Part shown: positions 266-64,000 of the stretch, one piece after another
How the letters are laid out: every line of letters starts with the position of its first letter
Numbering within the stretch: position 1 is the stretch's first letter
From: Bugula neritina
Taxonomy: Eukaryota; Animalia; Bryozoa
Direction of reading: 5' to 3'
Length of the DNA: 64,000 bases
Assembly (NCBI GenBank): GCA_964035545.1
Contig: OZ037766.1
Coordinates: forward strand, 26,703,473-26,767,472
The notes under the pieces: model-generated
The model's input: only the letters and a program-made list of their open reading frames with translations
What the model was told of the DNA's origin: nothing
The model's database searches: none
Translations under genes and position numbers: made by a program

Positions 266-37886
<37,621 letters not shown>

Positions 37887-57647: not shown

Positions 57648-58585
57648 GTAACTAACAAAAACCTGAATCTCGAAAATAATTATTATATATAAATAAAATG
57701 GTAAAGCTGCATATAAGCTATGCTATTTGTTGTAATATGTAGAATAATAAATATAAACTTGTAGAGTCTCGAAACATCAACACAATCTAGTTGGCAATTA
57801 GTAACCGTTTTTTTAAACTCTTCTATAACCTTATTGAATAAGCCAATAATATTTATACTTGCTCAAACATTCTATAATTAACTGACATTATTAAAAAAAA
57901 TGAAATTTAGGTTTTGGGATTTTCAGTGACCTTCATACACTTGTTATGACTAAATTTTAATTAAAAATTTAAACTAGAATTCCTCATCTTATTGTAACAA
58001 CTTTCTCTTCATTTAGTAATCTGTCAATTGCTATATTAGATTTGATTGTATCAATGGTAAATCATATAAGTAGATTATAGAAAGCACGACGCATTTTTCT
58101 TTTCTGCGAATTTACAATGTATAATATTTATAGGAACAATTTATGAAGTCATTTTTAATATGTAAAGCAGTTAAAAAATTTTCCATAAAGGCAGAGTTGC
58201 TCATAGATACTTTGCCAATCCATAACTTTTTATTCTCAGCTTCAAACATGGCCAGATGTTCCACTTGCATTCAATCTACCACTTTCTTTGATTGTAATTG
58301 TTTTGCATTAATTATACATGTGGTTTTATTTATTTATTTTAATTATACATGTGGTTTTATAGCTCACAGCACATTTGAAAACTAAACATTGCAAAACAAA
58401 ATCAGATAAATTTGCAGAAACTATGTTTATAATAGGCTGGGTATATATAGTTAAAACACACCAACACTGTTTATAATTTAATATAGTTCGTCTCATCAAA
58501 CCACTGTGTTCAATCTGGAAACACACAAGTAAAGTATCCTACATCTATAGCAGCTAGATTAGCCAGTAGAGCAAACAGGTATATT

Positions 58586-61500
58586 CTAGAATCGGTTTGG
58601 TTCTGTTGATGTTGATTCTTCATGGGGATAGAAATTAGGGAATAAATAGAGTTGTCTGCTTTTGGTGGGAAAACACTCAAAAGTTGGTTGTTGTCCTCCT
58701 ATGTCTATGTTCCTTTTAGCTACGAGAAGACTCTTCTCTCTTACTATTTCTTTAACCTGTAACACAAGTTACAATAGCAATAACATAAAAAGGTAGAGAA
58801 AGAAAGGCAGGAAAGATATATAGGTAAAGATCTCATCTTGAAGTGACAAATACTATAGAAGACGATTTACGCCCTGGACACACTTTGCCATACTTTATGC
58901 CCCAGCCTGTAACGTAAAATGTCAGTCATTTTAATGTGTTAAGGCTAAAGTGCCTATTGGGTATGATCTATGACACCTCATCAAACATTTATGTCCAATG
59001 TATTGACGCGAACGTCTTCCTGGCCAATAGGAGCCCGCCGCAAGATTTTTGAATCAAGCAGTAGATAAGATCCTGACCCACTGCAATGTCGTACAGGAAG
59101 CCTGTACATTTTTAAAAATAGCTGATATTTTACATTACAGCCTACAGTGTGACAAAGTGTGTCTAGGGGGTTAATAATTCTCACTTTCTCAAATATAGTG
59201 TTGAGGTCATCTTCACAGGCATAGTTGTACAGCGTACAGACCAGTGCCCGAAGAAGCCATGTGCCTTGTCGAGAGTGCCTCATTGAGCGAAAGCCTACAA
59301 ATAGAAATTTACAGTAACTAGGTCACCATTTGACCTTTTACCTTTATGTCTGACATTTAACTAATAAAACAACAATGTACTTCAAGCAGCAGAATCTATG
59401 CAAAATACACATAAACATAGTTGATCAGTGTAGACTGTTATTGTAACTACACACATACATAATGCAGTATGAAATGTCACTACTGGCAGTAACCATAGTA
59501 ACTACACTCATGCATAGTTTAGATTTTGCTGTAGTTATGGTAGCTACACATATACATAGTTTAGTATTGGCTGTAACCATGGTGACTACACATATACATA
59601 AATTGGTATTAACTGTAACCATGGTGAATACACGTACACATAAATTAGTATTGACTGTAACCATGGTGACTACACAGTACACATATATATAAATTAGTAT
59701 TGACTGTAACCATGGTGACTACACATATACATAAATTAGTATTGAGTGCATGTAACCATGGTGAATATATATATATAAACAATTATGTTGAACAAGATTG
59801 ACATGCCTCGAACTCTTCAGAGCTTCGAAATCTAAGCAAAAAAACAAGATTTAACAAAATCCGCCCATATATATTATATTGAGCTAAAATTCTGACTCTC
59901 TCACATTGCTCGTTTATCACATATAGATAGATGGATTTCTAACCCATCTTATCTTTTATTTCCTTCACATTAGACTGCATAAACTTACTAAGAAAACTGG
60001 CTTTTAAAATGAACAGATCATCAGTAGCCAGATGCTCTCCAGGAAATGGGGATTCCACTCTCACGGAGTGGTTGGCTACCGCTCGTACTCTATCGTCAGA
60101 ATAGAATCCTAGACTATCTGGCCTGGCTGCAACACACCACATATAGCAATTTCATTGTCACTGTTTACCCTCTTGAAACTCTGGCTGTCTTGTATTTCAT
60201 TCAAACACAGACATGGCACCCTCTACTAGTATAATACAGTTAGACATACTTCCAGCACAGGCCTGTATAATGATTATTTTAGGTTTCCCAGCCATTGACT
60301 CAAATTCATACGGCGACATTAAATCATAAATGTCTGTCAGCTTGACTGGAACTCCATCTCTACCATAAACCTCTGTTTCAGTGCCATGGGTCATGATGAC
60401 CAAGGCAATGGCACCATAGCCAAACCTTTCATGATTTGGATGCTTAGTTTCTCTTCTAATTGTTGCCAACATCTCCTGTGATTTAAATACAAAATAATAT
60501 TTATTTTCTACAAAAAGAAAACTATGAGAAACTGTGTTTATTTGCTGCATCACCATCGTTGTTAATCTCTAATGGTCTCAGATGATAGTTGCTGGTTTCT
60601 GCACGTCTTCATGTGACTGGGGAGGTCAATGATGAAGTGGTAGTGTTTACTGCAGAGACTACATATGTGTGCTGTTGCCGCCTGCTCGGTAGATAATTTT
60701 TGTTAAGTTTTAGTTTAGAAAAATTGAGCAATAGATTTCTCACACTTCACTCACCTCGCCACTAAGGTTTGTGTGAATTTCACAGATAAAGTGAAGTTGA
60801 GTGAAAACATTACAAATGTTAATAACATCCATGTCTGAACCTTCTCTTTTATCCATTCTCACTTGACTGGATGAAGCAAAGTCTCTGTTGTTGATGATTA
60901 AACATCTTCCTCTAACAGGGAAAGACATTTGGTAAACCTGCACAGTTGTTGAATTTAATAGATTAGAAAATAAAGCTAATTGTTAATTGCACATAACTCA
61001 GAAACTTGTTTATCTTTAAATAATGCATGTGAGCAAAAAATATCTTTTTATTATTTAGATATAGTAAGCATTTGAAAATAACAGCTTGCCTTCTTGGAGC
61101 TGTAGACACTATTCTTGAGATCTTTTTCAAAGTACGGCCTGAGTGGGATATTTATAATGTCTACATCCATGTTCATTTCATCCAAATATTTCAAGCTTTC
61201 CGAGGGATTGCTGCTTTGGGTTTTTAATCCTGGATATACAATTCCAGAGTAATATTTATTGAAACATATATCTTCCTTTGATAACTATATATTATAAATA
61301 TTGTTTAAGTTACAAGGAACACAATTTCATATCTACTTTTATTCAATTTGTATAAATTACAGTCATTACACTTTATAGCTATAAATGAACTAGCACAATA
61401 AAATAAATACACTAAAACAAAACAAACAGGCCACCTAAACGGCTTTCTTTACTCTAAGGTATTTCACATAAATAACAGCAACATCTAAAGTTGGTGTGGA

Positions 61501-63223
61501 GTTTATAAACTTGTGGAAGCTTAGCGAGCTTAGGATTTGGCTAAATTTAATATTTTGTTATTCAATTGAAACACGAATAGCTTGCTTGGCAGCTACTTAA
61601 TTGAATAGATTAAAAACATCCCAAGAGCTGTAAGCTGCAAGGCTGCGTTAGTTAAAGTAATATAAAAACTAAGCAATTTCAAACTAAAGCAAGCCGTTAA
61701 AAGTAGGTCCTCTAATTAAAGTATTTATCAGTGCATATTATATGTCCTATTAGTGGCAATTGATGGTGCATACATTACATGCAATACATTATAACATGCA
61801 ATGCATTACATACAATGCATACAACACGTTACATCCAGTACATTAATAAAAACAATACAATACATATCTTAAGTTACATACAGTATATGTAATACATTCA
61901 CAGAACTCTGCAAGGCTGCTGTAGCTATTATGTGGGTTATTGTTTAATTTGACTGAGGTAGTGGTAAGTGAGAATAAAATAGGTTTTGTTTATGTGCATA
62001 GAACTAATATTATTAATGAAGTATATTTCGTTCTCATTGTTTCTTCAAACAGGGCTACTGAATCAATCGATATCGTTATTTACATATTTTCAATAGCAGC
62101 CTTTTTAAATGAGTAAAAGGTAGCCAAAACTGCATACCGCAACAAGAAGACAAGTATTTTCACCTCGGACAGATTTTTGTGCCCATTTCTGTCTTTCCTT
62201 TAGAAAGCTAAGGATTTCAGCCTGTTTGTTGACTTTTGAGGAGTCTAGTGCAACATGCCCCAAACGATTCTTTGTATTGAACAGTTTTAGGTACTCATCA
62301 GGTGATAGCCTGCTGTACATGGTGTCTATAGCATCTGTATGACCCCCAACAGCTGCCAAATGTGTGACTGTGTTTCCATCTTTGTTCTGCATTGCAAGAT
62401 AAGAGTAAAGCTCGCCATCAGGCAAACTATCTACGATGACTTTAAATGTTTTAGTTTGTCCGTGCTCTGAAGCCCAGTGCAAAGCTGTGTTGTTACTTTT
62501 GTTTTGAATTTTGAGTAGCTTTTGAAAATCACCCTTTGGCACGGTTTCCATGAGCCATTTCACAGTTTCAGCGTACCCACTTTTTGCAGCTTTGTGCAAT
62601 GCTGTATTACCTTTTTTATTTTGTATCTTGAGTAGTTTGTAGAACTCATCCACTTGTACACATTCTTCTATCTTTTCCAATATATCAGTGTGGCCATTTC
62701 TTGCTGCGCAGTGCACAGCTGTATCGCCAGCTTTATCTTGCACTCCCAAGAGCTTACATAAATCGGTAACTGGTATAGATTCTATAACGTACCTCATCAC
62801 CTCTACATGACCATTCACTGCTGAATAATGTGCTACAGTAAGCCCTTGCTTGTTCTGTATATTGAGTAGTTTGGTCAAATCAGAGGCTGATACTGTGTCT
62901 ACTATACACTTCATTACCTCACTACTGTCCATGTCAGCTGCGTTGTGTGCCGCTGTGTTTCCAGCATTGTTTTGGATACTGAGCAGTTTATACAGTTCTG
63001 CTGGTGACACTGAGAATATGACGAGGTTGAGTCTATCTACGCTGTTATCTGAAGCTGCTCGGTGCAGATCTGTCCATCCATCTGTATCCTTCTCGGCCAA
63101 TGTCTTTAACATCTCAGTTCTTGAAACATTGGCCAACTTGTCTTTGAGTTGTTTCGTCCAATCAGGAGCCTCCATTTCTTTGCTTTCTAGAAACTCTGTT
63201 TCGGGTTCTCCGCTCTGGGACAT
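58586..63223 (-). CDS. Ankyrin-repeat-containing caspase (peptidase C14A), ~675 aa
   Basis: Exons 63223-62164 (ankyrin array), 61229-61090 (GC donor), 60937-60755 (YQMSFPVRGRCLIINN..REGSDMD), 60475-60250 (IMTHG..GKPKIIIIQACAG), 60126-59989 (..DDLFILKAS), 59294-59185 (SMRHSRQGTWLLRAL), 58756-58586 (QQP..RQLYLFP). Total 2028 nt, open, phases consistent. Confidence 0.88.
59440..59770. repeat. ~42-bp minisatellite (gtaaccatggtgactacacatatacataaattagtattgact), ~7-8 copies
   Basis: Directly visible inside caspase intron 5. Confidence 0.9.
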
Positions 63224-64000
63224 TTTATTTACAATATGCTCCCTGCATGTGAATAGAAGATGTAATTATATAGTGGCCAGTAATAAGCTACATGTCCTGC
63301 AAGCTACAGCCTTCTTATCCATTGTCTGTCAACATAGCCCTACATTCTTCCAACTGGTTTAATGTTTACTGGTAACTCTAATGTGACAGTGTAAAGTTTA
63401 TTCAGAAAACTGTAGTATCTCAGTCTATATCAATAAACAAAGAGTCATTCAAAAATAAGAAAAGCCTAATATAAGTTTTTGTTGACTTAAAAAGCAATTC
63501 TATTCAAAAGTAACTTCAGTTCAATAATTTTATTGTGAATGAAATACAAACGTGAATATATAGTAGTAAAAGACTAGGCACAATAAAAGTAGGATTTGTC
63601 TTCTCATTGAACACAAAGTATAACTCTATATAGAAAAAGATAGTATATATACACACATACCTGCGGTAGAGTATAAGTATATCATATAGTCTTTATGAAA
63701 TAAATCATAATGCTGCTATAAATAAAAAAAATATCTATCTAAATGAGCTTCAAATAGAAGATGTGCTTATTATTTCTTTTTTTAAAATGCTTAGCCACTA
63801 TAATTATGGAAAATTTTTGTTATTGAACATCATTAGAAAAAAAATTATAAAGTAAGTATTATCTTTGAAACCATACTTTTGTTATTTATGTTTTGTGAAA
63901 GTTTTTACATACATGTACAAAGAGTTATAAGAAAAATAAAAATACTTGAACTGCTTGCCTCATAATGAAGATGTGCTAAGCAAGTTTGCTACATTGTATT

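Follow-up and report, generated by a model that had tools for sequence, protein, structure and literature searches.

We analysed a 64,000-nucleotide stretch of the Bugula neritina genome (C2:26,703,473-26,767,472; hereafter the window) and describe a gene model on its minus strand, between window positions 63223 and 58586, that joins an array of ankyrin repeats to a caspase. On balance we think it likely that this is one gene encoding a 675-residue zymogen, that it is a lone, deep-branching member of a lineage-specific family of ankyrin-caspases, and that it would act by the mechanism we propose below. That the ankyrin array, the linker that follows it and the caspase belong to one transcription unit is, on comparative grounds, highly probable, since the paralogues, where examined, share the order of the array, the linker exon and the intron phases and have no conserved Met in the linker.

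An ankyrin array, a linker and a caspase in one open frame

The gene model consists of seven exons, with boundaries that we verified base by base (Table 1). Joined, they give 2,028 nucleotides, or 675 codons and a TAG stop, and a frame check with a local script found no internal stop. Every acceptor is AG, and the donors are GT in five of the six introns. Exon 1 ends in phase 1 (CGA G/gtgaaa) and exon 2 begins at ag/GA, which restores a Gly codon; exon 2 is 140 nucleotides long and returns the frame to phase 0, and exon 3 runs into a stop codon if exon 2 is skipped. The first-pass annotation of this window had described a 353-codon ankyrin exon that splices in phase (CGA G/GTGAAA to CCAG/GA) through a linker exon, and we recovered the same letters and phase, together with the open frame of 675 codons. 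It had also given the next junction as 61090/60937; these coordinates are right, and we correct the account in one respect, as the donor of exon 2 is GC, not GT, a feature that had gone unmentioned.

We searched for related genes in 216,009,554 bases of the genome, with large contigs C1-C9 (published assembly, 216.00 Mb in nine chromosomes; PMC11480708). The catalytic exon, exon 4, had 135 genome matches, the ankyrin exon at least 171 and the Pfam profile Peptidase_C14 at least 177. In the exon 4 search, 17 paralogues stood closest, at 54-70% identity (E ≤2e-21), and the rest reached at most 52% (E ≥4e-17). A count of paralogues had been suggested in the first-pass annotation: 14 of these 17 carry an ankyrin array on the same strand, 1.5-3.5 kb upstream. 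The predicted exon structure is far beyond chance, with the exon order repeated at 14 other loci in the genome.

We fetched the closest paralogues and aligned them exon by exon with tblastn. Five caspase exons were present in identical order at all seven of the closest fetched loci (on C2 and C7), and the linker exon was found at five of these seven and at three further fetched loci. Homologues of the linker exon occur at nine paralogous loci, among them four genes clustered at C2:30.5 Mb, C7, C6:3.45 Mb and C9, and when the linker exon was searched genome-wide, every match was flanked by an ankyrin array on one side and caspase exons on the other. In the C2:30.5 Mb cluster, the ankyrin exon's non-repeat tail aligns as well. 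All four genes there (L013-L016) have the ankyrin-exon donor at the homologous position and in phase 1 (G/gtgagt), and their linker acceptor is again ag/GA. The linker alignment holds no conserved Met, and the two Met residues in the linker of the window gene are Arg in the paralogues. A separate caspase protein therefore cannot have its conserved start in the linker.

A probably lineage-specific family

From these searches, we estimate that the ankyrin-caspase family of B. neritina has about 15-18 genes. We built a tree of caspase exons from genes of the B. neritina genome alone, comprising 15 ankyrin-bearing genes, an ankyrin-less trio and four outgroup caspases. All 15 ankyrin-bearing genes fell together, with support of 83/90, and the window gene formed a singleton branch of length 0.29 without a close sister. 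The ankyrin-less trio (L020, L021 and L022, at C6:0.25, 2.53 and 2.59 Mb) belongs to the 17 closest paralogues and lies outside the ankyrin-bearing group. No ankyrin array was found within ~7 kb upstream of these three genes, and the upstream open reading frames (ORFs) of at least 70 residues scanned at L020 contained no domain recognisable with Pfam.

The caspase part has been under long-term purifying selection. Between the caspase exons of the window gene and those of eight paralogues, non-synonymous divergence (dN) was 0.23-0.28, synonymous divergence (dS) was saturated, and their ratio, omega, was at most ~0.14. Both the saturation of dS and the depth of the singleton branch indicate an old family. 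The window gene is a compact, eight-repeat member of it that should be easy to express: its array is encoded by ~1.0 kb, whereas the arrays in the C2:30.5 Mb cluster take up 2.6-3.2 kb. The earlier proposal that ankyrin repeats replace the CARD or DED prodomain holds at the genomic level, on the evidence of one gene model and of a structure conserved among paralogues.

A complete caspase with its predicted specificity pocket

In Pfam and structure searches, we scored each exon of the gene separately. The Peptidase_C14 profile was matched in order and at successive positions by exon 3 (31.9 bits), exon 4 (42.4 bits) and exon 6 (12.8 bits). Exons 3 and 4 each exceed the cut-off of 21.4 bits, and exon 6 stands at 12.8 bits with an E value of 0.098. 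The best matches of the catalytic exon among solved structures were CED-3, caspase-3 and caspase-2. Exon 4 aligns with CED-3 at 6.8e-11, with MTHG opposite SHG and QACAG opposite QACRG, both in register. Exon 3 aligns with zebrafish caspase-3 at 7.7e-08, which places KREGSD opposite PRNGTD, and exon 6 places SMRHSRQGTW opposite SWRNSKDGSW of the caspase-3 p12 subunit. The exon 6 alignment is weak alone (E 0.68), and it is in register and conserved among paralogues.

As judged from these alignments, the p20+p10 caspase is complete, with an intact catalytic dyad and a predicted Asp-specific S1 pocket. In the numbering of the gene model, the catalytic and pocket residues are Arg431, His491, Gln532, Cys534 and Arg588. 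The first-pass annotation had claimed a complete p20+p10 domain on the basis of the catalytic His (MTHG) and Cys (QAC) and of three pocket residues, the Arg of REGSDMD, the Gln of QAC and the Arg of SMR. The Pfam matches and the alignments with solved caspases bear out the domain, and all five residues fall in register, the last by the weak exon 6 alignment.

Some of these motifs vary within the family. In the alignment, the catalytic pentapeptide of the paralogues is QACAG, QACGG or QSCAG, and the exon 6 motif, SMR in the window gene, is SAR in six of seven aligned paralogues and SWR in caspase-3. A loop of p20 encoded by exon 3 is shorter by five to six residues than in the paralogues. Four residues past QACAG, an Asp is conserved in an alignment with seven paralogues (TRPD/S); its position is that of the first processing site in caspase-3.

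An ankyrin array of 39-residue units

Exon 1 matches the Pfam profiles Ank_2 (3.5e-39) and Ank (1.6e-22). It contains eight ankyrin-type units, each of exactly 39 residues, spanning residues ~35-346 (window 62186-63121, minus strand), and in a pattern scan the 39-residue anchor spacing recurs six times. The usual ankyrin unit has 33 residues and two helices. A single-sequence AlphaFold2 model of exon 1 (mean pLDDT, the predicted local confidence, 83.9; pTM, the predicted template-modelling score, 0.79) is a solenoid in which each unit is predicted to have three helices, the extra helix being formed by an xDLxKLL stretch that replaces the usual loop. Residues 1-34 form a partly disordered cap. 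In a Foldseek search with the model, the top matches were ankyrin-1, designed ankyrin repeat proteins (DARPins) and AnkB, with TM-scores of only 0.3-0.6.

A conserved linker of ~46 residues connects the array to the caspase. Its motif SLKYLDExNxDVDI is common to the paralogues in the alignment, and the Asp that precedes Ile (DVD/I) is kept in all six aligned copies. The array itself shares 43-49% identity with the arrays of the paralogues, and the catalytic exon 64-70%. That the array has diverged far more than the catalytic exon fits a role in recognition.

Proposed activation and alternative readings

In the reading we favour, the zymogen would consist of an N-terminal cap, eight 39-residue ankyrin-type repeats, a linker of ~46 residues and a p20+p10 caspase, and the family would have originated within the very large caspase expansion of B. 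neritina. The ankyrin solenoid may substitute for a death-fold prodomain as the protein-binding module. Two zymogens would meet on a bound partner or ligand, and dimerisation would activate the caspase, after which self-processing at TRPD/S, perhaps also at DVD/I, would free the protease from the repeat array. The stretch that precedes p20, at ~400 residues, is a long prodomain, and such a zymogen would be recruited to a platform and activated by proximity. That the array senses a ligand directly, without an adaptor, as the first-pass annotation suggested, is a more tentative idea, which we regard as a possibility and not as the probable case. A broader proposal seems to us unlikely, namely that the bryozoan ankyrin-caspases are one-piece recognition-and-death proteins whose variable ankyrin faces would directly bind non-self or symbiont-derived molecules and set off the attached protease without an adaptor, and whose null-allele and presence/absence polymorphism among colonies, such as the X1 frameshift described below, would reflect balancing dynamics of the immune or allorecognition type in a colonial animal.

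Several results weigh against the reading we favour. A search of public runs for the locus gave one match, sample X1, and no RNA run. The X1 run is DNA, its contigs run through the introns and they contain no exon-exon joint; therefore, the splicing of the gene rests on comparative evidence. Searches with the ankyrin exon did not retrieve a protein of the same build. A word-indexed protein search returned six distant ankyrin proteins and no caspase fusion, a result of little weight, as 675-residue proteins fall outside the length range for a 353-residue query. In an exhaustive search of representative proteins, giant ankyrin proteins dominated, and Pfam found an N-terminal ankyrin array with a C-terminal caspase in none of the ten most suitable matches. 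The donor of intron 2 is GC (AAG/gcaagc), in contrast to the GT (AGT/gtaagg) of the four paralogues compared in the C2:30.5 Mb cluster. Since X1 is identical to the reference over 60980-61123, the GC donor is present in both samples.

The X1 data also bear on the state of this copy. X1 is ~1.3% divergent from the reference and has haplotype bubbles with about half the depth, and so represents the same locus in another individual. Behind position 60777 it carries an inserted T at a depth of 103.3/103.3, which shifts the frame by +1 at codon 454 and brings a stop into frame at codon 459, upstream of the catalytic exon. No compensating indel was found among the X1 differences listed, and the X1 colony appears to be homozygous for a null of the caspase part. 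Among the differences listed, which leave 26 others aside and make the figures approximate, 12 are non-synonymous and five synonymous, and the ratio of non-synonymous to synonymous polymorphism (pN/pS) is 0.65. This value fits neutrality, and an omega of 0.2 is rejected (P ~0.02). The density of differences listed is 0.84% in exons and introns alike.

The donor, the frameshift and the allele differences count against the reading we favour, and they speak for another reading, that the architecture is real but this copy is a dying or polymorphic pseudogene, in which a T-to-C change weakens splicing at the donor, constraint has been lost and nulls segregate. We regard this as rather improbable, although the GC donor and the X1 frameshift allele do make the present function of this copy uncertain. 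In the reference allele, 675 codons stay open through all seven exons, and none of the catalytic or pocket residues is lost. AAG/GCAAG agrees with the usual donor consensus at seven positions out of nine, as is the case in functional GC-AG introns. The pN/pS value covers the differences listed and not the 26 others. Moreover, the low long-term omega indicates that constraint held for most of the history of the gene, so that constraint was relaxed recently if at all, or the gene belongs to a fast-turnover kind with segregating nulls. At present, as in many fast-evolving genes of the immune type, constraint on this copy appears to be weak. The X1 frameshift is the family's first sign of a segregating null allele, a pattern expected of immune genes with fast turnover.

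Two further readings concern how the array and the caspase belong together. One would divide the model into two genes, an ankyrin-only protein of 372 residues that ends at the read-through stop at 62105 and a short-prodomain caspase with a promoter in intron 1 or 2. The read-through ORF to 62105 does exist, there is an ATG at codon 404 in exon 3, the linker contains Met codons too, an upstream ankyrin array is missing from three of the close caspase paralogues, all on C6, and the search of public runs gave no RNA that joins the two parts. We nevertheless consider it very improbable. At 14 loci the array, the linker and the caspase follow one another in this order on one strand, with donor, acceptor and phase kept where examined; the linker is conserved yet holds no conserved Met, the residue being Arg in the paralogues; and the Met of exon 3 belongs to the usual YxM motif of caspases, which is also present in caspase-3.

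The other reading keeps the single gene and changes the role of the array, which would be a docking or autoinhibitory module cut off at the linker Asp by an upstream caspase, or a handle for an ankyrin-binding platform and hence adaptor-dependent. We hold this to be possible, though not probable. The conserved linker Asp hints at regulated removal of the array, the more than 130 exon 4 matches in the genome could build caspase cascades, and a public protein, P0008, combines a caspase, a STAND NTPase and ankyrin repeats. On the other hand, the Ile at P1' of the linker site is not a favoured context for caspases, and the divergence of the array relative to the catalytic exon is more in keeping with a variable surface for recognition than with a fixed handle. 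Designed ankyrin proteins, as cited in PMC11463336, can bind and inhibit caspases, which speaks for an inhibitory array.

Features of the gene and its surroundings

Table 1. Features of the ankyrin-caspase gene, in window coordinates, and loci of its paralogues, in genome coordinates
Feature	Coordinates	Strand	Evidence and remarks
TATA-like box TATATAA, 49 nt before the ATG; putative promoter element	63266-63272	-	Pattern scan
Exon 1: ATG, N-terminal cap, ankyrin array, short tail; 353 codons + 1 nt	62164-63223	-	Pfam Ank_2, 3.5e-39
Exon 2: linker exon, phase 1 to phase 0	61090-61229	-	Frame check and homologues in paralogues
Conserved linker motif SLKYLDEMNMDVDI; Asp before Ile a candidate site of prodomain removal	61156-61197	-	Alignment; cleavage putative
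GC donor of intron 2, AAG/gcaagc	61088-61089	-	Boundary check and comparison with paralogues
Exon 3: start of p20, Arg431 of the S1 pocket in KREGSD	60755-60937	-	Pfam Peptidase_C14 positions 1-48
Site of the +1 insertion in sample X1	60777-60778	-	X1 depth with insertion 103.3/103.3
Exon 4: catalytic; His491 codon 60386-60388 (MTHG), Cys534 codon 60257-60259 (QACAG)	60250-60475	-	Pfam Peptidase_C14 positions 54-128
Exon 5: intersubunit linker with conserved Asp (TRPD/S), first p10 strand	59989-60126	-	Alignment with seven paralogues; processing site putative
Exon 6: p10 with Arg588 in SMR	59185-59294	-	Pfam Peptidase_C14 positions 173-206, E 0.098
Exon 7: end of p10, GGQQPTFECFPTK, and TAG stop	58586-58756	-	64-80% identity to paralogues over 44 residues
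First polyadenylation-like signal, ATTAAA, 103 nt past the stop; candidate	58477-58482	-	Pattern scan
Ankyrin-caspase paralogue loci	C2:30.51-30.55 Mb cluster, C2:31.06, C2:32.92, C7:5.54, C6:3.45, C5:0.35, C9:9.32-9.41 Mb cluster		

Two introns of the gene contain repeated sequence. In intron 5, window 59484-59779 is a tandem array of ~6 copies of a 42-bp unit with 75-83% matches; a 91-bp unit was also scored. In intron 6, X1 depth rises about ninefold over 58901-59234 (932 against ~103), and the contigs there skip 162-173 bases or have loose ends. This segment is a dispersed repeat or a small mobile element.

At the other end of the window, ORFs at 6583-6936 and 10004-10372 on the minus strand match teneurin EGF and teneurin galactose-binding-like domains. 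Since a teneurin gene fills the low-coordinate part of the window, the ankyrin-caspase gene is solitary and not part of a tandem cluster. This position beside a teneurin gene, together with the exon 3 loop deletion, SMR, the GC donor and the long private branch, distinguishes it from the paralogues compared. Its most distinctive features are the 39-residue repeat with three predicted helices, the GC donor and the apparent null allele in another colony.

Two caspase loci elsewhere in the genome also stood out. On the minus strand of C3, a caspase exon match at C3:4512121 is followed downstream by a very large run of ankyrin matches (C3:4,479,000-4,512,400), which may be a caspase-first, ankyrin-last arrangement. 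The best Peptidase_C14 match of the genome (1.9e-34), at C4:5000994-5001812 on the minus strand, covers the full profile in one open frame of 345 residues and appears to be an intron-less caspase gene.

Comparison with known systems

Caspase activation is usually explained by death-fold adaptors. Like the CARD and DED initiator caspases (CED-3, caspase-2, -8 and -9), the predicted protein has a long interaction prodomain, a linker, p20 and p10, the catalytic dyad, a QACxG motif and an Asp pocket. Its prodomain is a repeat solenoid, whereas theirs is a six-helix death fold, and homotypic recruitment to an apoptosome, PIDDosome or DISC is therefore not expected. The catalytic pentapeptide also differs, being QACAG here and QACRG or QACQG in those enzymes.

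A second point of comparison is provided by caspase-STAND-ankyrin proteins such as P0008 and by the NLR-like systems of fungi and bacteria (PMC8195603), which likewise couple a protease of the C14 fold to a variable repeat array presumed to recognise ligands. P0008, a public protein of 1,878 residues, was the second-best match of the ankyrin exon, at 41% identity, and carries a caspase at its N terminus, an nSTAND3 NTPase in between and a long ankyrin array at its C terminus. In these systems, an NTPase switch lies between the protease and the C-terminal repeats, whereas the window gene has no NTPase and its repeats are N-terminal.

The closest parallel has already been named. The first-pass annotation had allowed that the architecture might be unreported, but "ANK caspases" have been named in parasitic flatworms, described there as specific to them, and in one annelid, Alitta virens (PMC11463336); that paper cites Schistosoma as the place of their first description (Lee et al. 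2014). By the refuting condition that the annotation itself had set, the architecture is thus not unreported. A phrase search found the term in no other paper. The sampling of PMC11463336 comprised molluscs, annelids, a brachiopod and flatworms, and no bryozoans, and among the best-ranked literature that mentions both Bugula and caspase, we found no description of bryozoan caspases. As a gene model, and from the structure of its paralogues, the window gene would fit the definition of an ANK caspase, with an ankyrin prodomain and a caspase in one polypeptide. It would share with the flatworm and A. virens proteins the ankyrin array as a prodomain in place of CARD or DED, and both groups are lophotrochozoan. 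The flatworm ANK caspases are reported to be sister to DED caspases (PMC11463336), whereas the B. neritina family, with ~15-18 copies, is nested in the bryozoan caspase expansion. Because of this nesting, and because the best matches of the window gene are CED-3, caspase-3 and caspase-2, the comparison hints that the bryozoan and flatworm ankyrin-caspases are of independent origin. What is new here is a compact, deep-branching bryozoan member of the ANK-caspase kind. A repeat solenoid that replaces the death fold outside the flatworms, in more than 12 copies, would represent a second, probably independent, system for wiring recognition to a caspase.

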